From assembly GCA_964057225.1 (NCBI GenBank), contig OZ059897.1, forward strand, positions 5,146,001-5,210,000: a stretch of 64,000 nt of DNA, written 5' to 3'. Both the position numbers and the translations under genes were made by a program. The notes under the pieces were generated by a model, which saw only the letters and a program-made list of their open reading frames with translations, did not search any database and was not told the DNA's origin. How positions within the stretch are numbered: the stretch's first letter is position 1; every line of letters starts with the position of its first letter. Source of the stretch: Auanema rhodensis (lineage: Eukaryota > Animalia > Nematoda). Positions 6,001 through 37,700 of the stretch are shown here, one piece after another.

Positions 6001-9000
6001 TTTTTAGACTAATATGGACATGGGGAATCTAATTTTGGGAACCGCATCTCTTTATCTTTCACGTGAAGCAAGTTAGATACCAAGTACACATCACGTGCAC
6101 ATTTAATTAGCATAAATTAAAGTTCACGTAAATTTCAAAGTCATGGTTACCATGCACCAATATCAATAAAAATTTGTTTTTAAACTAATATGGACATGTG
6201 GAATCTAATTTTGAAAACCGCATCTCTTTATCTTTCACGTGAAGTGAGTTACATACCAAGTGCACATCACGTGTACATTTAATTAGCATAAATTAAAGTT
6301 CACGTAAATTTCAAAGTCATGGTTACCATGAACCAATATCAATAACAATTTGTTTTTAGACTAATATGGACATGTGGAATCTAATTTTGAAAACCGCATC
6401 TCTTTATCTTTCACGTGAAGTGAGTTACATACCAAGTGCACATCACGTGTACATTTAATTAGCATAAATTAAAGTTCACGTAAATTTCAAAGTCATGGTT
6501 ACCATGCACTAATATCAATAAAAATTTGTTTTTAGACTAATATGGACATGGGGAATCTAATTTTGAAAACCGCATCTCTATATCTTTCACGTGAAGCGAG
6601 TTACATACCAAGTGCACATCACGTGTACATTTAATTAGCATAAATTAAAGTTCACGTAAATTTCAAAGTCATGGTTACCATGCACTAATATCAATAAAAA
6701 TTTGTTTTTAGACTAATATGGACATGTGGAATCTAATTTTGAAAACCGCATCTCTTTATCTTTCACGTGAAGTGAGTTACATACCAAGTGCACATCACGT
6801 GTACATTCAATTAGCATAAATTAAAGTTCACGTAAATTTCAAAATCATGGTTACCATACACCAATATCAATAAAAATTTGTTTTTAGACTAATATGGACA
6901 TGTGGAATCTAATTTTGAAAACCGCATCTCTTTATCTTTCACGTGAAGCGAGTTACATACCAAGTGCACATCACGTGCACATTTAATTAGCATAAATTAA
7001 AGTTCACGTAAATTTCAAAGTCATGGTTACCATGCACCAATATCAATAAAAATTTGTTTTTAGACTAATATGGACATGTGGAATCTAATTTTGAAAACCG
7101 CATCTCTTTATCTTTCACGTGAAGCAAGTTACATACCAAGTGCACAGCACGTGTACATTTAATTAGCATAAATTAAAGTTCACGTAAATTTCAAAGTCAT
7201 GGTTACCATGCACCAATATCAATAAAAATTTGTTTTTAGACTAATATGGACATGGGGAATCTAATTGTGAAAACCGCATCTCTTTATCTTTCACGTGAAG
7301 CGAGTTACATACCAAGTGCACATCACGTGTACATTTAATTAGCATTAATTAAAGTTCACGTAAATTTCAAAGTCATGGTTACCATGAACCAATATCAATA
7401 ACAATTTGTTTTTAGACTAATATGGACATGTGGAATCTAATTTTGAAAACCGCATCTCTTTATCTTTCACGTGAAGTGAGTTACATACCAAGTGCACATC
7501 ACGTGTACATTTAATTAGCATAAATTAAAGTTCACGTAAATTTCAAAGTCATGGTTACCATGAACCAATATCAATAACAATTTGTTTTTAGACTAATATG
7601 GACATGTGGAATCTAATTTTGAAAACCGCATCTCTTTATCTTTCACGTGAAGTGAGTTACATACCAAGTGCACATCACGTGTACATTTAATTAGCATAAA
7701 TTAAAGTTCACGTAAATTTCAAAGTCATGGTTACCATGCACTAATATCAATAAAAATTTGTTTTTAGACTAATATGGACATGGGGAATCTAATTTTGAAA
7801 ACCGCATCTCTTTATCTTTCACGTGAAGCAAGTTACATACCAAGTGCACAGCACGTGTACATTTAATTAGCATAAATTAAAGTTCACGTAAATTTCAAAG
7901 TCATGGTTACCATGCACCAATATCAATAAAAATTTGTTTTTAGACTAATATGGACATGGGGAATCTAATTTTGGGAACCGCATCTCTTTATCTTTCACGT
8001 GAAGCAAGTTAGATACCAAGTACACATCACGTGCACATTTAATTAGCATAAATTAAAGTTCACGTAAATTTCAAAGTCATGGTTTCCATGCACCAATATC
8101 AATAAAAATTTGTTTTTAGACTAATATGGACATGTGGAATCTAATTTTGAAAACCGCATCTCTTTATCTTTCACGTGAAGTGAGTTACATACCAAGTGCA
8201 CATCACGTGTACATTTAATTAGCATAAATTAAAGTTCACGTAAATTTCAAAGTCATGGTTACCATGAACCAATATCAATAACAATTTGTTTTTAGACTAA
8301 TATGGACATGTGGAATCTAATTTTGAAAACCGCATCTCTTTATCTTTCACGTGAAGTGAGTTACATACCAAGTGCACATCACGTGTACATTTAATTAGCA
8401 TAAATTAAAGTTCACGTAAATTTCAAAGTCATGGTTACCATGCACCAATATCAATAAAAATTTGTTTTTAGACTAATATGGACATGTGGAATCTAATTTT
8501 GAAAACCGCATCTCTTTATCTTTCACGTGAAGTGAGTTACATACCAAGTGCACATCACGTGTACATTCAATTAGCATAAATTAAAGTTCACGTAAATTTC
8601 AAAATCATGGTTACCATGCACCAATATCAATAAAAATTTGTTTTTAGACTAATATGGACATGTGGAATCTAATTTTGAAAACCGCATCTCTTTATCTTTC
8701 ACGTGAAGCGAGTTACATACCAAGTGCACATCACGTGTACATTTAATTAGCATTAATTAAAGTTCACGTAAATTTCAAAGTCATGGTTACCATGAACCAA
8801 TATCAATAACAATTTGTTTTTAGACTAATATGGACATGTGGAATCTAATTTTGAAAACCGCATCTCTTTATCTTTCACGTGAAGCAAGTTACATACCAAG
8901 TGCACAGCACGTGTACATTTAATTAGCATAAATTAAAGTTCACGTAAATTTCAAAGTCATGGTTACCATGCACCAATATCAATAAAAATTTGTTTTTAGA

Positions 9001-12000
9001 CTAATATGGACATGGGGAATCTAATTGTGAAAACCGCATCTCTTTATCTTTCACGTGAAGCGAGTTACATACCAAGTGCACATCACGTGTACATTTAATT
9101 AGCATTAATTAAAGTTCACGTAAATTTCAAAGTCATGGTTACCATGAACCAATATCAATAACAATTTGTTTTTAGACTAATATGGACATGTGGAATCTAA
9201 TTTTGAAAACCGCATCTCTTTATCTTTCACGTGAAGTGAGTTACATACCAAGTGCACATCACGTGTACATTTAATTAGCATAAATTAAAGTTCACGTAAA
9301 TTTCAAAGTCATGGTTACCATGCACCAATATCAATAAAAATTTGTTTTTAGACTAATATGGACATGGGGAATCTAATTTTGAAAACCGCATCTCTTTATC
9401 TTTCACGTGAAGCAAGTTACATATCAAGTGCACAGCACGTGTACATTTAATTAGCATAAATTAAAGTTCACGTAAATTTCAAAGTCATGGTTACCATGCA
9501 CCAATATCAATAAAAATTTGTTTTTAGACTAATATGGACATGGGGAATCTAATTTTGGGAACCGCATCTCTTTATCTTTCACGTGAAGCAAGTTAGATAC
9601 CAAGTACACATCACGTGCACATTTAATTAGCATAAATTAAAGTTCACGTAAATTTCAAAGTCATGGTTACCATGCACCAATATCAATAAAAATTTGTTTT
9701 TAGACTAATATGGACATGTGGAATCTAATTTTGAAAACCGCATCTCTTTATCTTTCACGTGAAGTGAGTTACATACCAAGTGCACATCACGTGTACATTC
9801 AATTAGCATAAATTAAAGTTCACGTAAATTTCAAAATCATGGTTACCATGCACCAATATCAATAAAAATTTGTTTTTAGACTAATATGGACATGTGGAAT
9901 CTAATTTTGAAAACCGCATCTCTTTATCTTTCACGTGAAGCGAGTTACATACCAAGTGCACATCACGTGTACATTTAATTAGCATTAATTAAAGTTCACG
10001 TAAATTTCAAAGTCATGGTTACCATGCACCAATATCAATGAAAATTTGTTTTTAGACTAATATGGACATGTGGAATCTAATTTTGAAAACCGCATCTCTT
10101 TATCTTTCACGTGAAGCAAGTTACATACCAAGTGCACAGCACGTGTACATTTAATTAGCATAAATTAAAGTTCACGTAAATTTCAAAGTCATGGTTACCA
10201 TGCACCAATATCAATAAAAATTTGTTTTTAGACTAATATGGACATGGGGAATCTAACTGTGAAAACCGCATCTCTTTATCTTTCACGTGAAGCGAGTTAC
10301 ATACCAAGTGCACATCACGTGTACATTTAATTAGCATTAATTAAAGTTCACGTAAATTTCAAAGTCATGGTTACCATGAACCAATATCAATAACAATTTG
10401 TTTTTAGACTAATATGGACATGTGGAATCTAATTTTGAAAACCGCATCTCTTTATCTTTCACGTGAAGTGAGTTACATACCAAGTGCACATCACGTGTAC
10501 ATTTAATTAGCATAAATTAAAGTTCACGTAAATTTCAAAGTCATGGTTACCATGAACCAATATCAATAACAATTTGTTTTTAGACTAATATGGACATGTG
10601 GAATCTAATTTTGAGAACCGCATCTCTTTATCTTTCACGTGAAGTGAGTTACATACCAAGTGCACATCACGTGTACATTTAATTAGCATAAATTAAAGTT
10701 CACGTAAATTTCAAAGTCATGGTTACCATGAACCAATATCAATAACAATTTGTTTTTAGACTAATATGGACATGTGGAATCTAATTTTGAAAACCGCATC
10801 TCTTTATCTTTCACGTGAAGTGAGTTACATACCAAGTGCACATCACGTGTACATTTAATTAGCATAAATTAAAGTTCACGTAAATTTCAAAGTCATGGTT
10901 ACCATGCACTAATATCAATAAAAATTTCTTTTTAGACTAATATGGACATGGGGAATCTAATTTTGAAAACCGCATCTCTTTATCTTTCACGTGAAGCAAG
11001 TTACATACCAAGTGCACAGCACGTGTACATTTAATTAGCATAAATTAAAGTTCACGTAAATTTCAAAGTCATGGTTACCATGCACCAATATCAATAAAAA
11101 TTTGTTTTTAGACTAATATGGACATGGGGAATCTAATTTTGGGAACCGCATCTCTTTATCTTTCACGTGAAGCAAGTTAGATACCAAGTACACATCACGT
11201 GCACATTTAATTAGCATAAATTAAAGTTCACGTAAATTTCAAAGTCATGGTTTCCATGCACCAATATCAATAAAAATTTGTTTTTAGACTAATATGGACA
11301 TGTGGAATCTAATTTTGAAAACCGCATCTCTTTATCTTTCACGTGAAGTGAGTTACATACCAAGTGCACATCACGTGTACATTTAATTAGCATAAATTAA
11401 AGTTCACGTAAATTTCAAAGTCATGGTTACCATGAACCAATATCAATAACAATTTGTTTTTAGACTAATATGGACATGTGGAATCTAATTTTGAAAACCG
11501 CATCTCTTTATCTTTCACGTGAAGTGAGTTACATACCAAGTGCACATCACGTGTACATTTAATTAGCATAAATTAAAGTTCACGTAAATTTCAAAGTCAT
11601 GGTTACCATGCACCAATATCAATAAAAATTTGTTTTTAGACTAATATGGACATGTGGAATCTAATTTTGAAAACCGCATCTCTTTATCTTTCACGTGAAG
11701 TGAGTTACATACCAAGTGCACATCACGTGTACATTCAATTAGCATAAATTAAAGTTCACGTAAATTTCAAAATCATGGTTACCATGCACCAATATCAATA
11801 AAAATTTGTTTTTAGACTAATATGGACATGTGGAATCTAATTTTGAAAACCGCATCTCTTTATCTTTCACGTGAAGCGAGTTACATACCAAGTGCACATC
11901 ACGTGTACATTTAATTAGCATTAATTAAAGTTCACGTAAATTTCAAAGTCATGGTTACCATGAACCAATATCAATAACAATTTGTTTTTAGACTAATATG

Positions 12001-14420
12001 GACATGTGGAATCTAATTTTGAAAACCGCATCTCTTTATCTTTCACGTGAAGCAAGTTACATACCAAGTGCACAGCACGTGTACATTTAATTAGCATAAA
12101 TTAAAGTTCACGTAAATTTCAAAGTCATGGTTACCATGCACCAATATCAATAAAAATTTGTTTTTAGACTAATATGGACATGGGGAATCTAATTGTGAAA
12201 ACCGCATCTCTTTATCTTTCACGTGAAGCGAGTTACATACCAAGTGCACATCACGTGTACATTTAATTAGCATTAATTAAAGTTCACGTAAATTTCAAAG
12301 TCATGGTTACCATGAACCAATATCAATAACAATTTGTTTTTAGACTAATATGGACATGTGGAATCTAATTTTGAAAACCGCATCTCTTTATCTTTCACGT
12401 GAAGTGAGTTACATACCAAGTGCACATCACGTGTACATTTAATTAGCATAAATTAAAGTTCACGTAAATTTCAAAGTCATGGTTACCATGCACCAATATC
12501 AATAAAAATTTGTTTTTAGACTAATATGGACATGGGGAATCTAATTTTGAAAACCGCATCTCTTTATCTTTCACGTGAAGCAAGTTACATATCAAGTGCA
12601 CAGCACGTGTACATTTAATTAGCATAAATTAAAGTTCACGTAAATTTCAAAGTCATGGTTACCATGCACCAATATCAATAAAAATTTGTTTTTAGACTAA
12701 TATGGACATGGGGAATCTAATTTTGGGAACCGCATCTCTTTATCTTTCACGTGAAGCAAGTTAGATACCAAGTACACATCACGTGCACATTTAATTAGCA
12801 TAAATTAAAGTTCACGTAAATTTCAAAGTCATGGTTACCATGCACCAATATCAATAAAAATTTGTTTTTAGACTAATATGGACATGTGGAATCTAATTTT
12901 GAAAACCGCATCTCTTTATCTTTCACGTGAAGTGAGTTACATACCAAGTGCACATCACGTGTACATTCAATTAGCATAAATTAAAGTTCACGTAAATTTC
13001 AAAATCATGGTTACCATGCACCAATATCAATAAAAATTTGTTTTTAGACTAATATGGACATGTGGAATCTAATTTTGAAAACCGCATCTCTTTATCTTTC
13101 ACGTGAAGCGAGTTACATACCAAGTGCACATCACGTGTACATTTAATTAGCATTAATTAAAGTTCACGTAAATTTCAAAGTCATGGTTACCATGCACCAA
13201 TATCAATGAAAATTTGTTTTTAGACTAATATGGACATGTGGAATCTAATTTTGAAAACCGCATCTCTTTATCTTTCACGTGAAGCAAGTTACATACCAAG
13301 TGCACAGCACGTGTACATTTAATTAGCATAAATTAAAGTTCACGTAAATTTCAAAGTCATGGTTACCATGCACCAATATCAATAAAAATTTGTTTTTAGA
13401 CTAATATGGACATGGGGAATCTAACTGTGAAAACCGCATCTCTTTATCTTTCACGTGAAGCGAGTTACATACCAAGTGCACATCACGTGTACATTTAATT
13501 AGCATTAATTAAAGTTCACGTAAATTTCAAAGTCATGGTTACCATGAACCAATATCAATAACAATTTGTTTTTAGACTAATATGGACATGTGGAATCTAA
13601 TTTTGAAAACCGCATCTCTTTATCTTTCACGTGAAGTGAGTTACATACCAAGTGCACATCACGTGTACATTTAATTAGCATAAATTAAAGTTCACGTAAA
13701 TTTCAAAGTCATGGTTACCATGAACCAATATCAATAACAATTTGTTTTTAGACTAATATGGACATGTGGAATCTAATTTTGAGAACCGCATCTCTTTATC
13801 TTTCACGTGAAGTGAGTTACATACCAAGTGCACATCACGTGTACATTTAATTAGCATAAATTAAAGTTCACGTAAATTTCAAAGTCATGGTTACCATGAA
13901 CCAATATCAATAACAATTTGTTTTTAGACTAATATGGACATGTGGAATCTAATTTTGAAAACCGCATCTCTTTATCTTTCACGTGAAGTGAGTTACATAC
14001 CAAGTGCACATCACGTGTACATTTAATTAGCATAAATTAAAGTTCACGTAAATTTCAAAGTCATGGTTACCATGCACTAATATCAATAAAAATTTCTTTT
14101 TAGACTAATATGGACATGGGGAATCTAATTTTGAAAACCGCATCTCTTTATCTTTCACGTGAAGCAAGTTACATACCAAGTGCACAGCACGTGTACATTT
14201 AATTAGCATAAATTAAAGTTCACGTAAATTTCAAAGTCATGGTTACCATGCACCAATATCAATAAAAATTTGTTTTTAGACTAATATGGACATGGGGAAT
14301 CTAATTTTGGGAACCGCATCTCTTTATCTTTCACGTGAAGCAAGTTAGATACCAAGTACACATCACGTGCACATTTAATTAGCATAAATTAAAGTTCACG
14401 TAAATTTCAAAGTCATGGTT
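1..14420 (+). repeat. Forward satellite, variant domain A (copy 1)
   Basis: Enriched for CATGAACC..AATAACAA and AGCATTAATT variants, and for a multi-SNP monomer (TTTTGGGAACC, AGTTAGATA, AAGTACAC) at 582, 1814, 3046, 3750, 4630, 5158, 6038, 7974, 9558, 11142, 12726 and 14310. Confidence 0.9.
7761..14420 (+). repeat. 18-mer (3,168-bp) higher-order tandem duplication built on a 9-mer period
   Basis: Rare variants recur at +3168: GGTTTCC 8085/11253, TCAATGAAA 10040/13208, AATTTCTTT 10928/14096. The GGGAAC monomer recurs every 1584 bp from 7974 to 14310. Confidence 0.9.
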
Positions 14421-16431
14421 ACGTGCTGTGCACTTGGTATGTAACTTGCTTCACGTGAAAGATAAAGAGATGCGGTTTTCAAAATTAGATTCCCCATGTC
14501 CATATTAGTCTAAAAAGAAATTTTTATTGATATTAGTGCATGGTAACCATGACTTTGAAATTTACGTGAACTTTAATTTATGCTAATTAAATGTACACGT
14601 GATGTGCACTTGGTATGTAACTCACTTCACGTGAAAGATAAAGAGATGCGGTTTTCAAAATTAGATTCCACATGTCCATATTAGTCTAAAAACAAATTGT
14701 TATTGATATTGGTTCATGGTAACCATGACTTTGAAATTTACGTGAACTTTAATTTATGCTAATTAAATGTACACGTGATGTGCACTTGGTATGTAACTCA
14801 CTTCACGTGAAAGATAAAGAGATGCGGTTTTTAAAATTAGATTCCCCATGTCCATATTAGTCTAAAAACAAATTTTATTGATATTGGTGCATGGTAACCA
14901 TGACTTTGAAATTTACGTGAACTTTAATTTATGCTAATTAAATGTGCACGTGATGTGCACTTGGTATGTAACTTGCTTCACGTGAAAGATAAAGAGATGC
15001 GGTTTTCAAAATTAGATTCCCCATGTCCATATTAGTCTAAAAACAAATTTTTATTGATATTGGTGCATGGTAACCATGACTTTGAAATTTACGTGAACTT
15101 TAATTTATGCTAATTAAATGTACACGTGATGTGCACTTGGTATGTAACTTGCTTCACGTGAAAGATAAAGAGATGCGGTTTTCAAAATTAGATTCCCCAT
15201 GTCCATATTAGTCTAAAAACAAATTTTTATTGATATTGGTGCATGGTAACCATGACTTTGAAATTTACGTGAACTTTAATTTATGCTAATTAAATGTGCA
15301 CGTGATGTGCACTTGGTATGTAACTTGCTTCACGTGAAAGATAAAGAGATGCGGTTTTCAAAATTAGATTCCCCATGTCCATATTAGTCTAAAAACAAAT
15401 TTTTATTGATATTGGTGCATGGTAACCATGACTTTGAAATTTACGTGAACTTTAATTTATGCTAATTAAATGTGCACGTGATGTGCACTTGGTATGTAAC
15501 TTGCTTCACGTGAAAGATAAAGAGATGCAGTTTTCAAAATTAGATTCCCCATGTCCATAATAGTCTAAAAACAAATTTTTATTGATATTGGTGCATGGTA
15601 ACCATGACTTTGAAATTTACGTGAACTTTAATTTATGCTAATTAAATGTGCACGTGATGTGCACTTGGTATGTAACTTGCTTCACGTGAAAGATAAAGAG
15701 ATGCGGTTTTCAAAATTAGATTCCCCATGTCCATATTAGTCTAAAAACAAATTTTTATTGATATTGGTGCATGGTAACCATGACTTTGAAATTTACGTGA
15801 ACTTTAATTTATGCTAATTAAATGTGCACGTGATGTGCACTTGGTATGTAACTTGCTTCACGTGAAAGATAAAGAGATGCAGTTTTCAAAATTAGATTCC
15901 CCATGTCCATATTAGTCTAAAAACAAATTTTTATTGATATTGGTGCATGGTAACCATGACTTTGAAATTTACGTGAACTTTAATTTATGCTAATTAAATG
16001 TGCACGTGATGTGCACTTGGTATGTAACTTGCTTCACGTGAAAGATAAAGAGATGCGGTTTTCAAAATTAGATTCCTCATGTCCATATTAGTCTAAAAAC
16101 AAATTTTTATTGATATTGGTGCATGGTAACCATGACTTTGAAATTTACGTGAACTTTAATTTATGCTAATTAAATGTGCACGTGATGTGCACTTGGTATG
16201 TAACTTGCTTCACGTGAAAGATAAAGAGATGCGGTTTTCAAAATTAGATTCCCCATGTCCATATTAGTCTAAAAACAAATTTTTATTGATATTAGTGCAT
16301 GGTAACCATGACTTTGAAATTTACGTGAACTTTAATTTATGCTAATTAAATGTGCACGTGATGTGCACTTGGTATGTAACTTGCTTCACGTGAAAGATAA
16401 AGAGATGCGGTTTTCAAAATTAGATTCCCCA
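14421..16431 (-). repeat. Inverted satellite block 1 (2,011 bp, ~11.4 monomers)
   Basis: The sequence switches to the reverse complement at GTCATGGTT|ACGTGCTGTGCAC (14420/14421) and ends at TAGATTCCCCA (16431). Confidence 0.98.
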
Positions 16432-16451
16432 AAAAAAAAATTAGATTCGAT
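16432..16451. other. 20-nt junction insertion AAAAAAAAATTAGATTCGAT
   Basis: Out-of-register bases between the inverted block and the restart of forward satellite (TTACATACC at 16452). 16437-16448 copies AAAATTAGATTC from 16416-16427. Confidence 0.92.
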
Positions 16452-19400
16452 TTACATACCAAGTGCACATCACGTGCACATTTAATTAGCATGAATTAAA
16501 GTTCACGTAAATTTCAAAGTCATGGTTACCATGCACCAATATCAATAAAAATTTGTTTTTAGACTAATATGGACATGAGGAATCTAATTTTGAAAACCGC
16601 ATCTCTTTATCTTTCACGTGAAGCAAGTTACATACCAAGTGCACATCACGTGCACATTTAATTAGCATAAATTAAAGTTCACGTAAATTTCAAAGTCATG
16701 GTTACCATGCACCAATATCAATAAAAATTTGTTTTTAGACTAATATGGACATGGGGAATCTAATTTTGAAAACTGCATCTCTTTATCTTTCACGTGAAGC
16801 AAGTTACATACCAAGTGCACATCACGTGCACATTTAATTAGCATAAATTAAAGTTCACGTAAATTTCAAAGTCATGGTTACCATGCACCAATATCAATAA
16901 AAATTTGTTTTTAGACTAATATGGACATGGGGAATCTAATTTTGAAAACCGCATCTCTTTATCTTTCACGTGAAGCAAGTTACATACCAAGTGCACATCA
17001 CGTGCACATTTAATTAGCATAAATTAAAGTTCACGTAAATTTCAAAGTCATGGTTACCATGCACCAATATCAATAAAAATTTGTTTTTAGACTATTATGG
17101 ACATGGGGAATCTAATTTTGAAAACTGCATCTCTTTATCTTTCACGTGAAGCAAGTTACATACCAAGTGCACATCACGTGCACATTTAATTAGCATAAAT
17201 TAAAGTTCACGTAAATTTCAAAGTCATGGTTACCATGCACCAATATCAATAAAAATTTGTTTTTAGACTAATATGGACATGGGGAATCTAATTTTGAAAA
17301 CCGCATCTCTTTATCTTTCACGTGAAGCAAGTTACATACCAAGTGCACATCACGTGCACATTTAATTAGCATAAATTAAAGTTCACGTAAATTTCAAAGT
17401 CATGGTTACCATGCACCAATATCAATAAAAATTTGTTTTTAGACTAATATGGACATGGGGAATCTAATTTTGAAAACCGCATCTCTTTATCTTTCACGTG
17501 AAGCAAGTTACATACCAAGTGCACATCACGTGTACATTTAATTAGCATAAATTAAAGTTCACGTAAATTTCAAAGTCATGGTTACCATGCACCAATATCA
17601 ATAAAAATTTGTTTTTAGACTAATATGGACATGGGGAATCTAATTTTGAAAACCGCATCTCTTTATCTTTCACGTGAAGCAAGTTACATACCAAGTGCAC
17701 ATCACGTGCACATTTAATTAGCATAAATTAAAGTTCACGTAAATTTCAAAGTCATGGTTACCATGCACCAATATCAATAAAATTTGTTTTTAGACTAATA
17801 TGGACATGGGGAATCTAATTTTAAAAACCGCATCTCTTTATCTTTCACGTGAAGTGAGTTACATACCAAGTGCACATCACGTGTACATTTAATTAGCATA
17901 AATTAAAGTTCACGTAAATTTCAAAGTCATGGTTACCATGCACCAATATCAATAAAAATTTGTTTTTAGACTAATATGGACATGGGGAATCTAATTTTAA
18001 AAACCGCATCTCTTTATCTTTCACGTGAAGTGAGTTACATACCAAGTGCACATCACGTGCACATTTAATTAGCATAAATTAAAGTTCACGTAAATTTCAA
18101 ATTTATGGTTACCATGCACCAATATCAATAAAATTTGTTTTTAGACTAATATGGACATGGGGAATCTAATTTTGAAAACCGCATCTCTTTATCTTTCACG
18201 TGAAGCGAGTTACATACCAAGTGCACATCACGTGTACATTTAATTAGCATAAATTAAAGTTCACGTAAATTTCAAAGTCATGGTTACCATGCACCAATAT
18301 CAATAAAAATTTGTTTTTAGACTAATATGGACATGGGGAATCTAATTTTGAAAACCGCATCTCTTTATCTTTCACGTGAAGCGAGTTACATACCAAGTGC
18401 ACATCACGTGTACATTTAATTAGCATAAATTAAAGTTCACGTAAATTTCAAAGTCATGGTTACCATGCACCAATATCAATAAAAATTTGTTTTTAGACTA
18501 ATATGGACATGTGAAATCTAATTTTAAAAACCGCATCTCTTTATCTTTCACGTGAAGCAAGTTACATACCAAGTGCACATCACGTGTACATTTAATTAGC
18601 ATAAATTAAAGTTCACGTAAATTTCAAAGTCATGGTTACCATGCACTAATATCAATAAAAATTTGTTTTTAGACTAATATGGACATGGGGAATCTAATTT
18701 TGAAAACCGCATCTCTTTATCTTTCACGTGAAGTGGGTTACATACCAAGTGCACATCACGTGTACATTTAATTAGCATAAATTAAAGTTCACGTAAATTT
18801 CAAAGTCATGGTTACCATGCACTAATATCAATAAAAATTTGTTTTTAGACTAATATGGACATGTGGAATCTAATTTTAAAAACCGCATCTCTTTATCTTT
18901 CACGTGAAGCAAGTTACATACCAAGTGCACATCACGTGTACATTTAATTAGCATAAATTAAAGTTCACGTAAATTTCAAAGTCATGGTTACCATGCACCA
19001 ATATCAATAAAAATTTGTTTTTAGACTAATATGGACATGGGGAATCTAATTTTGAAAATCGCATCTCTTTATCTTTCACGTGAAGCGAGTTACATACCAA
19101 GTGCACATCACGTGTACATTTAATTAGCATAAATTAAAGTTCACGTAAATTTCAAAGTCATGGTTACCATGCACCAATGTCAATAAAAATTTGTTTTTAG
19201 ACTAATATGGACATGGGGAATCTAATTTTAAAAACCGCATCTCTTTATCTTTCACGTGAAGTGAGTTACATACCAAGTGCACATCACGTGTACATTTAAT
19301 TAGCATAAATTAAAGTTCACGTAAATTTCAAAGTCATGGTTACCATGCACCAATATCAATAAAAATTTGTTTTTAGACTAATATGGACATGGGGAATCTA

Positions 19401-27400: not shown

Positions 27401-29725
27401 ATAAATTAAAGTTCACGTAAATTTCAAAGTCATGGTTACCATGAACCAATATCAATAACAATTTGTTTTTAGACTAATATGGACATGTGGAATCTAATTT
27501 TGAAAACCGCATCTCTTTATCTTTCACGTGAAGTGAGTTACATACCAAGTGCACATCACGTGTACATTTAATTAGCATAAATTAAAGTTCACGTAAATTT
27601 CAAAGTCATGGTTACCATGAACCAATATCAATAACAATTTGTTTTTAGACTAATATGGACATGTGGAATCTAATTTTGAAAACCGCATCTCTTTATCTTT
27701 CACGTGAAGTGAGTTACATACCAAATGCACATCACGTGTACATTTAATTAGCATAAATTAAAGTTCACGTAAATTTCAAAGTCATGGTTACCATGCACTA
27801 ATATCAATAAAAATTTGTTTTTAGACTAATATGGACATGGGGAATCTAATTTTGAAAACCGCATCTCTTTATCTTTCACGTGAAGCAAGTTACATATCAA
27901 GTGCACAGCACGTGTACATTTAATTAGCATAAATTAAAGTTCACGTAAATTTCAAAGTCATGGTTACCATGCACCAATATCAATAAAAATTTGTTTTTAG
28001 ACTAATATGGACATGGGGAATCTAATTTTGGGAACCGCATCTCTTTATCTTTCACGTGAAGCAAGTTAGATACCAAGTACACATCACGTGCACATTTAAT
28101 TAGCATAAATTAAAGTTCACGTAAATTTCAAAGTCATGGTTACCATGCACCAATATCAATAAAAATTTGTTTTTAGACTAATATGGACATGTGGAATCTA
28201 ATTTTGAAAACCGCATCTCTTTATCTTTCACGTGAAGTGAGTTACATACCAAGTGCACATCACGTGTACATTCAATTAGCATAAATTAAAGTTCACGTAA
28301 ATTTCAAAATCATGGTTACCATGCACCAATATCAATAAAAATTTGTTTTTAGACTAATATGGACATGTGGAATCTAATTTTGAAAACCGCATCTCTTTAT
28401 CTTTCACGTGAAGCGAGTTACATACCAAGTGCACATCACGTGTACATTTAATTAGCATTAATTAAAGTTCACGTAAATTTCAAAGTCATGGTTACCATGC
28501 ACCAATATCAATGAAAATTTGTTTTTAGACTAATATGGACATGTGGAATCTAATTTTGAAAACCGCATCTCTTTATCTTTCACGTGAAGCAAGTTACATA
28601 CCAAGTGCACAGCACGTGTACATTTAATTAGCATAAATTAAAGTTCACGTAAATTTCAAAGTCATGGTTACCATGCACCAATATCAATAAAAATTTGTTT
28701 TTAGACTAATATGGACATGGGGAATCTAACTGTGAAAACCGCATCTCTTTATCTTTCACGTGAAGCGAGTTACATACCAAGTGCACATCACGTGTACATT
28801 TAATTAGCATTAATTAAAGTTCACGTAAATTTCAAAGTCATGGTTACCATGAACCAATATCAATAACAATTTGTTTTTAGACTAATATGGACATGTGGAA
28901 TCTAATTTTGAAAACCGCATCTCTTTATCTTTCACGTGAAGTGAGTTACATACCAAGTGCACATCACGTGTACATTTAATTAGCATAAATTAAAGTTCAC
29001 GTAAATTTCAAAGTCATGGTTACCATGAACCAATATCAATAACAATTTGTTTTTAGACTAATATGGACATGTGGAATCTAATTTTGAGAACCGCATCTCT
29101 TTATCTTTCACGTGAAGTGAGTTACATACCAAGTGCACATCACGTGTACATTTAATTAGCATAAATTAAAGTTCACGTAAATTTCAAAGTCATGGTTACC
29201 ATGAACCAATATCAATAACAATTTGTTTTTAGACTAATATGGACATGTGGAATCTAATTTTGAAAACCGCATCTCTTTATCTTTCACGTGAAGTGAGTTA
29301 CATACCAAGTGCACATCACGTGTACATTTAATTAGCATAAATTAAAGTTCACGTAAATTTCAAAGTCATGGTTACCATGCACTAATATCAATAAAAATTT
29401 CTTTTTAGACTAATATGGACATGGGGAATCTAATTTTGAAAACCGCATCTCTTTATCTTTCACGTGAAGCAAGTTACATACCAAGTGCACAGCACGTGTA
29501 CATTTAATTAGCATAAATTAAAGTTCACGTAAATTTCAAAGTCATGGTTACCATGCACCAATATCAATAAAAATTTGTTTTTAGACTAATATGGACATGG
29601 GGAATCTAATTTTGGGAACCGCATCTCTTTATCTTTCACGTGAAGCAAGTTAGATACCAAGTACACATCACGTGCACATTTAATTAGCATAAATTAAAGT
29701 TCACGTAAATTTCAAAGTCATGGTT
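21488..29725 (+). repeat. Forward satellite, variant domain A (copy 2)
   Basis: Matches ~4741-9322 at offset +16889 (TTTAAAC 4775/21664, CCATACAC 6858/23747, GGTTTCC 8085/24974) and 12495-14420 at offset +15305. Confidence 0.9.
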
Positions 29726-31736
29726 ACGTGCTGTGCACTTGGTATGTAACTTGCTTCACGTGAAAGATAAAGAGATGCGGTTTTCAAAATTAGATTCCCC
29801 ATGTCCATATTAGTCTAAAAAGAAATTTTTATTGATATTAGTGCATGGTAACCATGACTTTGAAATTTACGTGAACTTTAATTTATGCTAATTAAATGTA
29901 CACGTGATGTGCACTTGGTATGTAACTCACTTCACGTGAAAGATAAAGAGATGCGGTTTTCAAAATTAGATTCCACATGTCCATATTAGTCTAAAAACAA
30001 ATTGTTATTGATATTGGTTCATGGTAACCATGACTTTGAAATTTACGTGAACTTTAATTTATGCTAATTAAATGTACACGTGATGTGCACTTGGTATGTA
30101 ACTCACTTCACGTGAAAGATAAAGAGATGCGGTTTTTAAAATTAGATTCCCCATGTCCATATTAGTCTAAAAACAAATTTTATTGATATTGGTGCATGGT
30201 AACCATGACTTTGAAATTTACGTGAACTTTAATTTATGCTAATTAAATGTGCACGTGATGTGCACTTGGTATGTAACTTGCTTCACGTGAAAGATAAAGA
30301 GATGCGGTTTTCAAAATTAGATTCCCCATGTCCATATTAGTCTAAAAACAAATTTTTATTGATATTGGTGCATGGTAACCATGACTTTGAAATTTACGTG
30401 AACTTTAATTTATGCTAATTAAATGTACACGTGATGTGCACTTGGTATGTAACTTGCTTCACGTGAAAGATAAAGAGATGCGGTTTTCAAAATTAGATTC
30501 CCCATGTCCATATTAGTCTAAAAACAAATTTTTATTGATATTGGTGCATGGTAACCATGACTTTGAAATTTACGTGAACTTTAATTTATGCTAATTAAAT
30601 GTGCACGTGATGTGCACTTGGTATGTAACTTGCTTCACGTGAAAGATAAAGAGATGCGGTTTTCAAAATTAGATTCCCCATGTCCATATTAGTCTAAAAA
30701 CAAATTTTTATTGATATTGGTGCATGGTAACCATGACTTTGAAATTTACGTGAACTTTAATTTATGCTAATTAAATGTGCACGTGATGTGCACTTGGTAT
30801 GTAACTTGCTTCACGTGAAAGATAAAGAGATGCAGTTTTCAAAATTAGATTCCCCATGTCCATAATAGTCTAAAAACAAATTTTTATTGATATTGGTGCA
30901 TGGTAACCATGACTTTGAAATTTACGTGAACTTTAATTTATGCTAATTAAATGTGCACGTGATGTGCACTTGGTATGTAACTTGCTTCACGTGAAAGATA
31001 AAGAGATGCGGTTTTCAAAATTAGATTCCCCATGTCCATATTAGTCTAAAAACAAATTTTTATTGATATTGGTGCATGGTAACCATGACTTTGAAATTTA
31101 CGTGAACTTTAATTTATGCTAATTAAATGTGCACGTGATGTGCACTTGGTATGTAACTTGCTTCACGTGAAAGATAAAGAGATGCAGTTTTCAAAATTAG
31201 ATTCCCCATGTCCATATTAGTCTAAAAACAAATTTTTATTGATATTGGTGCATGGTAACCATGACTTTGAAATTTACGTGAACTTTAATTTATGCTAATT
31301 AAATGTGCACGTGATGTGCACTTGGTATGTAACTTGCTTCACGTGAAAGATAAAGAGATGCGGTTTTCAAAATTAGATTCCTCATGTCCATATTAGTCTA
31401 AAAACAAATTTTTATTGATATTGGTGCATGGTAACCATGACTTTGAAATTTACGTGAACTTTAATTTATGCTAATTAAATGTGCACGTGATGTGCACTTG
31501 GTATGTAACTTGCTTCACGTGAAAGATAAAGAGATGCGGTTTTCAAAATTAGATTCCCCATGTCCATATTAGTCTAAAAACAAATTTTTATTGATATTAG
31601 TGCATGGTAACCATGACTTTGAAATTTACGTGAACTTTAATTTATGCTAATTAAATGTGCACGTGATGTGCACTTGGTATGTAACTTGCTTCACGTGAAA
31701 GATAAAGAGATGCGGTTTTCAAAATTAGATTCCCCA
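29726..31736 (-). repeat. Inverted satellite block 2, copy of block 1 (+15,305 bp)
   Basis: Same left junction TGGTT|ACGTGCTGTG at 29726, same private variants (AAAGAAA, ATGCAGTT, CCATAATAG, TTCCTCAT) and same right junction. Confidence 0.98.
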
Positions 31737-31756
31737 AAAAAAAAATTAGATTCGAT
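31737..31756. other. Second copy of the 20-nt junction insertion
   Basis: TCCCC A10 TTAGATTCGAT TTACATACC, identical to the junction at 16431-16460. Confidence 0.92.
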
Positions 31757-34700
31757 TTACATACCAAGTGCACATCACGTGCACATTTAATTAGCATGAA
31801 TTAAAGTTCACGTAAATTTCAAAGTCATGGTTACCATGCACCAATATCAATAAAAATTTGTTTTTAGACTAATATGGACATGAGGAATCTAATTTTGAAA
31901 ACCGCATCTCTTTATCTTTCACGTGAAGCAAGTTACATACCAAGTGCACATCACGTGCACATTTAATTAGCATAAATTAAAGTTCACGTAAATTTCAAAG
32001 TCATGGTTACCATGCACCAATATCAATAAAAATTTGTTTTTAGACTAATATGGACATGGGGAATCTAATTTTGAAAACTGCATCTCTTTATCTTTCACGT
32101 GAAGCAAGTTACATACCAAGTGCACATCACGTGCACATTTAATTAGCATAAATTAAAGTTCACGTAAATTTCAAAGTCATGGTTACCATGCACCAATATC
32201 AATAAAAATTTGTTTTTAGACTAATATGGACATGGGGAATCTAATTTTGAAAACCGCATCTCTTTATCTTTCACGTGAAGCAAGTTACATACCAAGTGCA
32301 CATCACGTGCACATTTAATTAGCATAAATTAAAGTTCACGTAAATTTCAAAGTCATGGTTACCATGCACCAATATCAATAAAAATTTGTTTTTAGACTAT
32401 TATGGACATGGGGAATCTAATTTTGAAAACTGCATCTCTTTATCTTTCACGTGAAGCAAGTTACATACCAAGTGCACATCACGTGCACATTTAATTAGCA
32501 TAAATTAAAGTTCACGTAAATTTCAAAGTCATGGTTACCATGCACCAATATCAATAAAAATTTGTTTTTAGACTAATATGGACATGGGGAATCTAATTTT
32601 GAAAACCGCATCTCTTTATCTTTCACGTGAAGCAAGTTACATACCAAGTGCACATCACGTGCACATTTAATTAGCATAAATTAAAGTTCACGTAAATTTC
32701 AAAGTCATGGTTACCATGCACCAATATCAATAAAAATTTGTTTTTAGACTAATATGGACATGGGGAATCTAATTTTGAAAACCGCATCTCTTTATCTTTC
32801 ACGTGAAGCAAGTTACATACCAAGTGCACATCACGTGTACATTTAATTAGCATAAATTAAAGTTCACGTAAATTTCAAAGTCATGGTTACCATGCACCAA
32901 TATCAATAAAAATTTGTTTTTAGACTAATATGGACATGGGGAATCTAATTTTGAAAACCGCATCTCTTTATCTTTCACGTGAAGCAAGTTACATACCAAG
33001 TGCACATCACGTGCACATTTAATTAGCATAAATTAAAGTTCACGTAAATTTCAAAGTCATGGTTACCATGCACCAATATCAATAAAATTTGTTTTTAGAC
33101 TAATATGGACATGGGGAATCTAATTTTAAAAACCGCATCTCTTTATCTTTCACGTGAAGTGAGTTACATACCAAGTGCACATCACGTGTACATTTAATTA
33201 GCATAAATTAAAGTTCACGTAAATTTCAAAGTCATGGTTACCATGCACCAATATCAATAAAAATTTGTTTTTAGACTAATATGGACATGGGGAATCTAAT
33301 TTTAAAAACCGCATCTCTTTATCTTTCACGTGAAGTGAGTTACATACCAAGTGCACATCACGTGCACATTTAATTAGCATAAATTAAAGTTCACGTAAAT
33401 TTCAAATTTATGGTTACCATGCACCAATATCAATAAAATTTGTTTTTAGACTAATATGGACATGGGGAATCTAATTTTGAAAACCGCATCTCTTTATCTT
33501 TCACGTGAAGCGAGTTACATACCAAGTGCACATCACGTGTACATTTAATTAGCATAAATTAAAGTTCACGTAAATTTCAAAGTCATGGTTACCATGCACC
33601 AATATCAATAAAAATTTGTTTTTAGACTAATATGGACATGGGGAATCTAATTTTGAAAACCGCATCTCTTTATCTTTCACGTGAAGCGAGTTACATACCA
33701 AGTGCACATCACGTGTACATTTAATTAGCATAAATTAAAGTTCACGTAAATTTCAAAGTCATGGTTACCATGCACCAATATCAATAAAAATTTGTTTTTA
33801 GACTAATATGGACATGTGAAATCTAATTTTAAAAACCGCATCTCTTTATCTTTCACGTGAAGCAAGTTACATACCAAGTGCACATCACGTGTACATTTAA
33901 TTAGCATAAATTAAAGTTCACGTAAATTTCAAAGTCATGGTTACCATGCACTAATATCAATAAAAATTTGTTTTTAGACTAATATGGACATGGGGAATCT
34001 AATTTTAAAAACCGCATCTCTTTATCTTTCACGTGAAGTGAGTTACATACCAAGTGCACATCACGTGCACATTTAATTAGCATAAATTAAAGTTCACGTA
34101 AATTTCAAAGTCATGGTTACCATGCACCAATATCAATAAAATTTGTTTTTAGACTAATATGGACATGGGGAATCTAATTTTGAAAACCGCATCTCTTTAT
34201 CTTTCACGTGAAGCGAGTTACATACCAAGTGCACATCACGTGTACATTTAATTAGCATAAATTAAAGTTCACGTAAATTTCAAAGTCATGGTTACCATGC
34301 ACCAATATCAATAAAAATTTGTTTTTAGACTAATATGGACATGGGGAATCTAATTTTGAAAATCGCATCTCTTTATCTTTCACGTGAAGCAAGTTACATA
34401 CCAAGTGCACATCACGTGCACATTTAATTAGCATAAATTAAAGTTCACGTAAATTTCAAAGTCATGGTTACCATGCACCAATATCAATAAAATTTGTTTT
34501 TAGACTAATATGGACATGGGGAATCTAATTTTAAAAACCGCATCTCTTTATCTTTCACGTGAAGTGAGTTACATACCAAGTGCACATCACGTGTACATTT
34601 AATTAGCATAAATTAAAGTTCACGTAAATTTCAAAGTCATGGTTACCATGCACCAATATCAATAAAAATTTGTTTTTAGACTAATATGGACATGGGGAAT

Positions 34701-37700
34701 CTAATTTTAAAAACCGCATCTCTTTATCTTTCACGTGAAGTGAGTTACATACCAAGTGCACATCACGTGCACATTTAATTAGCATAAATTAAAGTTCACG
34801 TAAATTTCAAATTTATGGTTACCATGCACCAATATCAATAAAATTTGTTTTTAGACTAATATGGACATGGGGAATCTAATTTTGAAAACCGCATCTCTTT
34901 ATCTTTCACGTGAAGCGAGTTACATACCAAGTGCACATCACGTGTACATTTAATTAGCATAAATTAAAGTTCACGTAAATTTCAAAGTCATGGTTACCAT
35001 GCACCAATATCAATAAAAATTTGTTTTTAGACTAATATGGACATGGGGAATCTAATTTTGAAAACCGCATCTCTTTATCTTTCACGTGAAGCGAGTTACA
35101 TACCAAGTGCACATCACGTGTACATTTAATTAGCATAAATTAAAGTTCACGTAAATTTCAAAGTCATGGTTACCATGCACCAATATCAATAAAAATTTGT
35201 TTTTAGACTAATATGGACATGTGAAATCTAATTTTAAAAACCGCATCTCTTTATCTTTCACGTGAAGCAAGTTACATACCAAGTGCACATCACGTGTACA
35301 TTTAATTAGCATAAATTAAAGTTCACGTAAATTTCAAAGTCATGGTTACCATGCACTAATATCAATAAAAATTTGTTTTTAGACTAATATGGACATGGGG
35401 AATCTAATCTTGAAAACCGCATCTCTTTATCTTTCACGTGAAGTGGGTTACATACCAAGTGCACATCACGTGTACATTTAATTAGCATAAATTAAAGTTC
35501 ACGTAAATTTCAAAGTCATGGTTACCATGCACTAATATCAATAAAAATTTGTTTTTAGACTAATATGGACATGTGGAATCTAATTTTAAAAACCGCATCT
35601 CTTTATCTTTCACGTGAAGCAAGTTACATACCAAGTGCACATCACGTGTACATTTAATTAGCATAAATTAAAGTTCACGTAAATTTCAAAGTCATGGTTA
35701 CCATGCACCAATATCAATAAAAATTTGTTTTTAGACTAATATGGACATGGGGAATCTAATTTTGAAAATCGCATCTCTTTATCTTTCACGTGAAGCGAGT
35801 TACATACCAAGTGCACATCACGTGTACATTTAATTAGCATAAATTAAAGTTCACGTAAATTTCAAAGTCATGGTTACCATGCACCAATGTCAATAAAAAT
35901 TTGTTTTTAGACTAATATGGACATGGGGAATCTAATTTTAAAAACCGCATCTCTTTATCTTTCACGTGAAGTGAGTTACATACCAAGTGCACATCACGTG
36001 TACATTTAATTAGCATAAATTAAAGTTCACGTAAATTTCAAAGTCATGGTTACCATGCACCAATATCAATAAAAATTTGTTTTTAGACTAATATGGACAT
36101 GGGGAATCTAATTTTGAAAACCGCATCTCTTTATCTTTCACGTGAAGCAAGTTACATACCAAGTGCACATCACGTGCACATTTAATTAGCATAAATTAAA
36201 GTTCACGTAAATTTCAAAGTCATGGTTACCATGCACCAATATCAATAAAAATTTGTTTTTAGACTAATATGGACATGGGGAATCTAATTTTGAAAATCGC
36301 ATCTCTTTATCTTTCACGTGAAGCGAGTTACATACCAAGTGCACATCACGTGTACATTTAATTAGCATAAATTAAAGTTCACGTAAATTTCAAAGTCATG
36401 GTTACCATGCACCAATGTCAATAAAAATTTGTTTTTAGACTAATATGGACATGGGGAATCTAATTTTAAAAACCGCATCTCTTTATCTTTCACGTGAAGT
36501 GAGTTACATACCAAGTGCACATCACGTGTACATTTAATTAGCATAAATTAAAGTTCACGTAAATTTCAAAGTCATGGTTACCATGCTCCAATATCAATAA
36601 AAATTTGTTTTTAGACTAATATGGACATGGGGAATCTAATTTTGAAAACCGCATCTCTTTATCTTTCACGTGAAGCAAGTTACATACCAAGTGCACATCA
36701 CGTGCACATTTAATTAGCATAAATTAAAGTTCACGTAAATTTCAAAGTCATGGTTACCATGCACCAATATCAATAAAAATTTGTTTTTAGACTAATATGG
36801 ACATGGGGAATCTAATTTTAAAAACCGCATCTCTTTATCTTTCACGTGAAGCAAGTTACATACCAAGTGCACATCACGTGTACATTTAATTAGCATAAAT
36901 TAAAGTTCACTTAAATTTCAAAGTCATGGTTACCATGCACCAATATCAATAAAAATTTGTTTTTAGACTAATATGGACATGTGGAATCTAATTTTGAAAA
37001 CCGCATCTCTTTATCTTTCACGTGAAGTGAGTTACATACCAAGTGCACATCACGTGTACATTTAATTAGCATAAATTAAAGTTCACGTAAATTTCAAAGT
37101 CATGGTTACCATGCACCAATATCAATAAAAATTTGTTTTTAGATTAATATGGACATGGGGAATCTAATTTTGAAAACCGCATCTCTTTATCTTTCACGTG
37201 AAGCAAGTTACATACCAAGTGCACAGCACGTGTACATTTAATTAGCATAAATTAAAGTTCACGTAAATTTCAAAGTCATGGTTACCATGCACCAATATCA
37301 ATAAAAATTTGTTTTTAGACTAATATGGACATGGGGAATCTAATTTTGAAAACCGCATCTCTTTATCTTTCACGTGAAGCGAGTTACATACCAAGTGCAC
37401 ATCACGTGTACATTTAATTAGCATAAATTAAAGTTCACGTAAATTTCAAAGTCATGGTTACCATGCACCAATATCAATAAAAATTTGTTTTTAGACTAAT
37501 ATGGACATGTGAAATCTAATTTTAAAAACCGCATCTCTTTATCTTTCACGTGAAGCAAGTTACATACCAAGTGCACATCACGTGTACATTTAATTAGCAT
37601 AAATTAAAGTTCACGTAAATTTCAAAGTCATGGTTACCATGCACTAATATCAATAAAAATTTGTTTTTAGACTAATATGGACATGGGGAATCTAATCTTG

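Follow-up and report, generated by a model that had tools for sequence, protein, structure and literature searches.

A double fold-back scar, probably of the template-switch kind, resolved to the base in a nematode satellite array

Work on inverted duplications has described several systems in which a copied arm faces its own template across a short spacer. In origin-dependent inverted-repeat amplification, known as ODIRA, the products are forward-inverted-forward arrangements, each junction reading as an arm and a single-stranded loop followed by the inverted arm, and the loop lies to the side of the extended strand. The side on which the loop must lie at each ODIRA junction has been stated, and the preferred inverted-junction spacing of 40-80 bp has been explained, in so many words, by the Okazaki gap of the lagging template (PMC10766183). 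Two template switches, two spacers, junctional microhomology or insertions and a small scale mark the duplication-triplication/inverted-duplication rearrangements (DUP-TRP/INV-DUP) and the small inverted triplications (SIT), the latter with a median spacer of 30 bp and breakpoints linked to Okazaki termini and nucleosome dyads (PMC13334657). Fold-back inverted duplications of breakage-fusion-bridge (BFB) cycles likewise have an inverted arm that mirrors the adjoining flank over an unmirrored spacer, with short microhomology (PMC3907307). In homogeneous satellite arrays of Tribolium, which show macro-dyad symmetries, orientation switches with conserved inversion sites have been confirmed on raw HiFi reads (PMC13081366), the sequence of the inversion site being propagated as a unit (PMC13081366, PMC12581902). 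A structure with likenesses to all of these lies in a satellite array of the nematode Auanema rhodensis, within a stretch of 64,000 nucleotides (GCA_964057225.1, contig OZ059897.1, positions 5,146,001 to 5,210,000 of the forward strand) that is called the window here and is numbered from its first base. It is a base-resolved double fold-back scar of a known kind, probably the product of template switching: a 2-kb inverted block that ends on each side in a fold-back with a 228-nt loop.

The locus has the order and the loop polarity of ODIRA. Unlike ODIRA, however, it contains no triplication: each part of the block has one forward partner, and the block is a chimera of two flanks. Its loops measure 228 nt instead of the preferred 40-80 bp, and the pre-existing short inverted repeats amount to at most 2 nt (2 nt at the left junction, none at the right). 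SIT measure about 148/160/148 bp, their spacers 30 bp and their microhomology 6 bp, whereas here the inverted tract is 2 kb long, the spacers are 228 nt, no segment is triplicated, and a third, apparently homology-guided switch lies inside the inverted tract. The arms of BFB products span the whole duplicated segment and are accompanied by a terminal deletion, while here one arm stops at 409 bp and the other at 1489 bp, and the array continues in forward orientation. The inverted sub-arrays of Tribolium extend over kilobases to tens of kilobases, carry a degenerate subunit at the inversion site and occur in thousands of copies, in contrast to a 2-kb island with clean, base-resolved junctions; the likeness lies in propagation as a unit, seen here in a 6.2-kb cassette that is present twice (PMC13081366, PMC12581902). 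The origin of satellite strand switches, which complete assemblies make visible, is seldom resolved to the base. Private variants of individual monomers allow it in this array.

Two fold-backs around a chimeric block

A single array with a 176-bp unit spans all 64 kb (96% matches, 32% G+C; Tandem Repeats Finder). In the first 14 kb of the window the 176-bp register is strict, with zero indels, and variation is limited to some 30 polymorphic columns. When orientation was typed by k-mers and by phase mapping, two inverted blocks appeared in the window, at about 14421-16431 and at 29726-31736, the remainder being forward. At the first of them strand orientation changes at 14421 and reverts at about 16432-16452, and the sequence on either side can be divided into the following parts.

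13784..14192, forward strand: left forward arm L, native array, the exact reverse complement of 14421-14829 in register 228 only
14193..14420, forward strand: left loop S (228 nt), continuing L in phase, from 113 to 164 by way of one whole monomer; no inverted copy adjoins it
14421..14422, either strand: AC microhomology, fitting both templates
14421..14829, reverse strand: L', left portion of the inverted block, copy of L with 0/409 mismatches
14715..14829, reverse strand: in-register chimeric join of L' and R', 115 nt matching both flanks
14715..16203, reverse strand: R', right portion of the inverted block, copy of R with 1/1489 mismatches against 16452-17940, including a common 1-bp indel
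16204..16431, reverse strand: right loop S2' (228 nt), continuing R' in phase, from 88 down to 37 by way of one whole monomer
16432..16451, no strand assigned: filler of the right junction, an A-run, a 12-nt re-copy and GAT
16452..17940, forward strand: right forward arm R, native array, mirror of 16203-14715

Where monomers repeat in tandem, a fold-back spacer has no defined length beyond its value modulo the period, except when private variants show which monomer is the partner. At the left junction, which joins phases 164 and 112, the reverse complement of 14421-14855 was set against the forward flank in every in-phase register. A spacer of 228 left 3 mismatches in 435 positions, all at the far end, and none in the 409 positions nearest the junction (13784-14192 against 14421-14829), the first discriminating variant lying only 6 nt inside the inverted arm. 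A spacer of 52 gave 17 mismatches, one of 404 gave 11, and the remaining registers 7-21. Beyond 14829, that is upstream of 13784, identity with the left flank is at background level, with 3 mismatches at 14830-14846 (mirror 13767-13783) and 47 in 1557 past a 1-bp register shift beyond the arm. Forward sequence ends at 14420 and inverted sequence begins at 14421, with a 2-nt ambiguity left by the AC at 14421-14422, which would carry the forward end to 14422. A first-pass annotation of the sequence had read the left spacer as 14193-14420, 228 bp, or 230 bp with AC counted as forward. The analysis reproduces this spacer, 228 being the only near-perfect register, and the AC ambiguity with it; the alternative length is a trivial slip for 232.

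The right junction joins phases 37 and 89 and shows no microhomology. Inverted phase ends at 16431 (phase 37), 20 nt of non-array filler follow, and the exact mirror resumes at 16452, which pairs with 16203. Within the filler the re-copied piece at 16437-16448 is a direct repeat of 16416-16427. In-phase registers were compared over 900-1,300 bp, and 228 again stands out, with 1 mismatch in 1300 bp against 12 in 1300 bp for register 52 and 8 over 900 bp for register 404; registers longer than 404 lose phase at a shared 1-bp indel. Extended by gapped alignment, the mirror pairs 16452-17940 with 16203-14715 at 1 mismatch in 1489 bp, the identical 1-bp indel being present in both arms, and it breaks down beyond 17940 (8 mismatches in 190 bp). 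The sole differences in 1.5 kb of this palindrome are the arm mismatch between 16162 and 16493 and a private T at 16451, beside the filler. Both may have arisen as errors of synthesis during the event or as mutations after it.

A second, independent repeat finder returned identical arm pairs, with gaps of 228 nt at the left and 248 nt at the right. Since variants private to single monomers leave one mirror register at each end, and the registers are well above what chance would give, the extra 176 bases of each offset are real and carry no period ambiguity. The junction phases (164/112 and 37/89) and the decomposition of both offsets into 176+52, as first annotated, are borne out. The 228-bp stretch claimed at the right (16204-16431) holds as a phase-contiguous unmirrored stretch, but not as a physical gap, which is 248 nt with the 20-nt filler. 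Assignment of this variant-aware kind removes the one-period ambiguity to which every spacer length taken from a tandem repeat is subject.

As had been proposed, the two junctions are true fold-backs: the inverted arms mirror the adjoining flank specifically and in register 228 only (0/409 at the left, 1/1489 at the right), across an unmirrored spacer that carries the AC microhomology at the left and the 20-nt filler insertion at the right. Because the arms are so nearly perfect, both fold-backs are recent relative to the divergence of the array.

The block between them is chimeric, its left 294-409 nt copying the left flank and its right 1489-1604 nt the right flank. The flanks themselves are native. 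The join of L to the array outside it (X) recurs exactly, 13600-13950 reappearing at 10432-10782, and the entire left flank, 10929-14420, matches 7761-11252 base for base; the join of R to its outer neighbour (Y) recurs exactly as well, 17700-18200 reappearing at 34410-34910 and 38984-39484. The join of R to L has no copy elsewhere in the window, the closest comparisons leaving at least 4 mismatches in 251-351 nt, and a hypothetical join of X to Y was not found in the window. Since the X-L and R-Y joins recur in the forward array and the R-L join occurs only in the block, the block was copied from both flanks and not the reverse.

The two loops are different DNA (phases 113-164 for S, 37-88 for S2'), and a derivation of S and S2, the forward counterpart of S2', from overlapping parts of one ancestral stretch is rejected by 4 mismatches in either possible overlap. 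Read on the forward strand, the junctions have the same polarity, arm and loop followed by the opposite arm: L and S precede L', and R' and S2' precede R. The left loop continues the forward arm and the right loop the inverted arm, a scar follows each loop, and each loop is found on the 3' side of the growing strand, the side expected in ODIRA and in triplications. This is the pattern of a 3' end landing twice on the opposite strand, each time about 228 nt back from its own position. Together, the chimeric island and the two fold-backs of the same polarity point to replicative template switching, and not to inversion, BFB or symmetric break repair.

A proposed compound template switch and its rivals

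The reading that we prefer, at a probability of roughly 0.55, is that the structure is the scar of one compound template-switching event of replication type, and that the 6.2-kb cassette around it was later copied to a site 15.3 kb away in the array. During replication or break-induced replication, a nascent strand would have copied the native left array to 14420 or 14422 and then jumped, via the 2-nt AC microhomology, onto the complementary strand, landing 228 nt back from its tip. Backward copying over 294-409 nt would give L'. A traceless slide in register, guided by homology, would then place the strand on a monomer of homologous sequence in the tail of the native right segment R, and continued backward copying of about 1.5 kb of that segment plus 228 nt would yield R' and S2'. 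At this point the strand may have stalled and gained the A-run and the 12-nt local re-copy, before a second 228-nt jump back let forward synthesis resume into the native right array, the whole path taking three switches by one nascent strand. In this account the arms and loops, their breakpoints and polarity, the chimeric block, the native state of the flanks and the copied cassette are observed, while the replicative mechanism and the succession of switches are inferred. The 228-register mirrors on both sides support this reading, as does the common polarity, expected of a 3' end that lands behind itself on the opposite strand and, by our own strand-by-strand derivation, of the closed intermediate of ODIRA as well. 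The L'-R' join, in register within 115 nt of identity, argues for a homology-guided switch and not for end ligation, and the 2-nt microhomology at the left and the templated-insertion filler at the right are typical of microhomology-mediated or polymerase-theta-like switching. Linking both junctions to one event, as the first-pass annotation did, is reasonable for a single 2-kb block that copies two flanks and whose fold-backs are both recent and of the same polarity.

Several points weigh against this account. The path takes three switches and, in addition, the loss of the native forward S2 and of the stretch between S and S2. Public reads are stored as unitigs of 60-90 nt, too short to bridge or place the junctions. 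The naive chance of equal jumps, about 0.5-5%, is uncomfortable for pure coincidence, and both tips lie within 4 nt of dyad-equivalent positions in a quasi-palindromic monomer, hinting at a non-random determinant. The polarity argument is not absolute, since a loop can flip by recombination between inverted arms.

Could the two junctions be remnants of separate events? Two fold-backs or inverted duplications, whether of ODIRA-like or DUP-TRP/INV-DUP triplication type or by repair of a break through fold-back at both ends followed by single-strand annealing, might have bounded a longer inverted sub-array that an in-register deletion later shortened to the present L'-R' join, leaving the equal loops as a coincidence. 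The forward-inverted-forward order with ODIRA-like loop polarity would suit this history, in-register deletion and exchange are clearly active in the array (many long exact repeats, the 6.2-kb cassette copy), and the sudden drop from exact identity to about 3% divergence at both arm ends fits a deletion boundary. A triplication, however, predicts that the flanks copy each other and the whole block, whereas X differs from the tail of R, and Y from L, with 47/1557 mismatches beyond L. A two-ended break predicts a right loop in forward orientation beside R, so that an extra flip of the loop is needed, and the near-perfect arms leave little time for more events. We regard such a history as rather improbable. 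Far less credible still is an artefact of sequencing or assembly, in which a chimeric fold-back read or a mis-join in near-identical satellite was subsequently duplicated. The host array is extremely homogeneous, the structure is present in both copies of a base-perfect 6.2-kb repeat, and it has no read-level support, the public unitigs being as short as stated. An artefact would, however, have to produce two junctions with 228-nt loops, one with microhomology and the other with an A-run and a templated insertion, on either side of an in-register chimeric block, whereas library fold-back chimeras are normally spacer-less palindromes across the whole read. Comparable inversion sites in Tribolium satellites have moreover been seen on raw HiFi reads (PMC13081366).

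Other histories fail on the geometry of the block. A simple two-break inversion in place would join phases 165 and 113 at the right, where 37 and 89 are seen, and the block also duplicates both flanks; an inversion between staggered breaks with 228-nt overhangs is rejected, since it would make the right end of the block the reverse complement of S, which it is not. BFB, in which the mirror would run along the full inverted segment and, after a second cycle, the right flank would mirror all of the block and then the first junction, is excluded by mirrors that stop at 13784 on the left (47/1557 beyond) and at 17940 on the right, and a true inverted triplication by the match of each block half to one flank only and by flanks that are not mutual copies. 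Integration of an inverted-dimer circle by one crossover predicts exact tiling of the arms and a phase-continuous X-Y target. It is disfavoured because the X-L and R-Y joins are native, with exact copies elsewhere, and the R-L and X-Y joins were not found outside the block in the window. A mirror-symmetric fold-back of two break ends followed by annealing explains the in-register chimera well and is possible, but it is disfavoured as less economical because it predicts the right loop in forward orientation beside R and needs an additional flip by recombination between the arms. The same observation speaks against the symmetric resection that had been offered as a reason for equal loops, which predicts both loops contiguous with the outer forward arms, whereas it is the inverted arm that the right loop continues.

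Equal loops and the question of a ruler

The equality of 228 and 228 holds for the phase-contiguous unmirrored stretches; from arm to arm the gaps are 228 and, with the filler counted, 248. Other defensible breakpoints give about 228-232 at the left and 220-228 at the right, and if the re-copied 12-mer is taken as the inverted template the right-hand jump becomes about 220-224 nt. For two independent offsets the chance of exact equality is about 1/176 (about 0.5%) modulo the period, and that of equality within the +/-4 nt of breakpoint ambiguity about 5%, before allowing for the many numbers that a reader may compare. Most likely, the equal 228-nt jump-backs are a coincidence or, at most, reflect a soft constraint from single-stranded DNA behind the tip, and an exact ruler of 228 nt is improbable. 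A fixed length cannot be established from this locus alone, whose two junctions come from one compound event.

Under a physical ruler, the nearest usable single-stranded template would lie at a fixed distance of about 228 nt behind the 3' end, either at forks or on one displaced strand. In satellite chromatin this distance might separate the leading-strand tip from the first free lagging template, or might comprise a looped-out monomer plus about 50 nt; if it ran from the leading-strand tip to the last Okazaki fragment, equal loops would report fork geometry. By the natural breakpoints the two lengths agree exactly, the common polarity fits a leading-to-lagging switch, and since the junctions lie at different monomer phases no common microhomology site explains the equality. 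Relative to the dyad axis of the monomer the right junction is displaced by 4 nt as a rigid unit, the distance being conserved and not the positions, and ODIRA spacings have been ascribed to Okazaki-gap size by their authors (PMC10766183). Against a ruler stand a sample of two from one compound event, the arm-to-arm gap of 248 and the 220-224 nt given by the 12-mer, the published spacings, which are well under 228 (40-80 bp in yeast ODIRA; median 30 bp in SIT, PMC13334657), and the expectation that a fork gap varies continuously from 0 to one Okazaki length. We consider a ruler unlikely in each of these forms, if somewhat less so than the history of two separate events. The fixed physical length put forward in the first-pass annotation is a reasonable hypothesis, already published in spirit, and is neither shown nor refuted; it rests on two junctions and on setting aside the 20-nt filler at the right. 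Of the causes named there, the leading/lagging gap agrees in polarity and has the ODIRA precedent but disagrees in length, and nucleosome plus linker offers no obvious match, 228 not being the 176-bp period. If a ruler did operate, base-resolved satellite fold-back scars would be a natural read-out of fork geometry. Support for loop length as a fork feature has hitherto come only from spacing preferences in yeast amplicons, and the variant-aware method applied genome-wide would be a direct test of whether fold-back loop lengths reflect such a feature.

Alternatively, the sequence of the monomer could place the junctions. The unit is weakly palindromic around phase 102.5, so that contexts for stalling and landing might sit at mirror phases on both strands and the same offset recur. 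The best whole-monomer dyad pairs phases p and q at p+q=205, with 82 of 176 positions complementary, a score that 39 of 2000 shuffles reach. The left tip, phase 164, maps to phase 41, which is the exact end of the 12-mer re-copied at the right junction, and each tip follows a TTTCAAA element by about 9-13 nt and falls in or close to the middle of a short CATG-type palindrome. For the junction pair, however, the mirror point is p+q=201 and not 205, and there the symmetry of the monomer is nil (48/176). The landings lie 4-6 nt away from their dyad equivalents, microhomology is 2 nt at the left and zero at the right, and predicted single-strand DNA folds leave the 3' ends away from the landing sites. 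Moreover, a dyad accounts for 52 modulo 176, but not for exactly one added monomer in both jumps. A contribution from sequence is a minor rival, to which we give little weight. Self-priming aided by loop structure was rejected: the DNA folds leave both 3' ends unpaired, and the right loop folds no better than shuffles.

The copied cassette and the surrounding array

The whole structure is present a second time in the window, within a longer exact repeat.

12495..18701, forward strand: cassette with the whole double fold-back, 6,207 bp, base-identical to 27800-34006 at a shift of 15,305 bp
29726..31736, reverse strand: second inverted block, the duplicate copy inside 27800-34006

These two cassette copies are identical, each with its 2-kb inverted tract, and because the second block lies within a base-perfect duplicate the number of independent junctions stays at two. 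Beyond the cassette the two regions stay in register but differ by 2-3%. A tandem duplication of the whole 15.3 kb is ruled out by identity over 6,207 bp only. The exact copy shows later spread via in-register exchange, and the pattern suggests gene conversion, unequal exchange or re-integration as its route. The duplication of the cassette postdates the switching event, and so, probably, does the single arm mismatch (16162/16493).

The array to the left of the structure (window 7761-14420) has a higher-order periodicity of 18 monomers, or 3,168 bp, 7761-11252 being identical to 10929-14420. Further long exact repeats occur in the array, such as 34138-38415 at a shift of 4,574. In the right domain there are monomers of 175 bp, with A4 replacing A5 in the run ATAAAAATTT (positions 17769-18140, 33074-34850, 39053-39420 and 63686); they alternate with 176-bp monomers to form 351-bp dimers. 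One 1-bp indel of this A4/A5 type is mirrored within the inverted block, near 14860.

The monomer consensus contains a perfect 10-nt palindrome, TTCACGTGAA, a second CACGTG, and the element CATGGT-T-ACCATG (phases 74-83, 108-113 and 158-170, respectively), the apex of the last being the site of the left breakpoint. In predicted single-strand folds the CACGTG palindromes of adjacent monomers pair, so that a whole 176-nt unit could loop out. A literature search for the monomer sequence returned no match. In public runs labelled as at least three different organisms the satellite is found at very high word depth (10^5-10^7), and the family is thus common to close relatives. At 47142-47160 of the window one monomer carries a 5-nt deletion, ATAAAAATTTG having become ATAATG, and the register of the array moves by 5.

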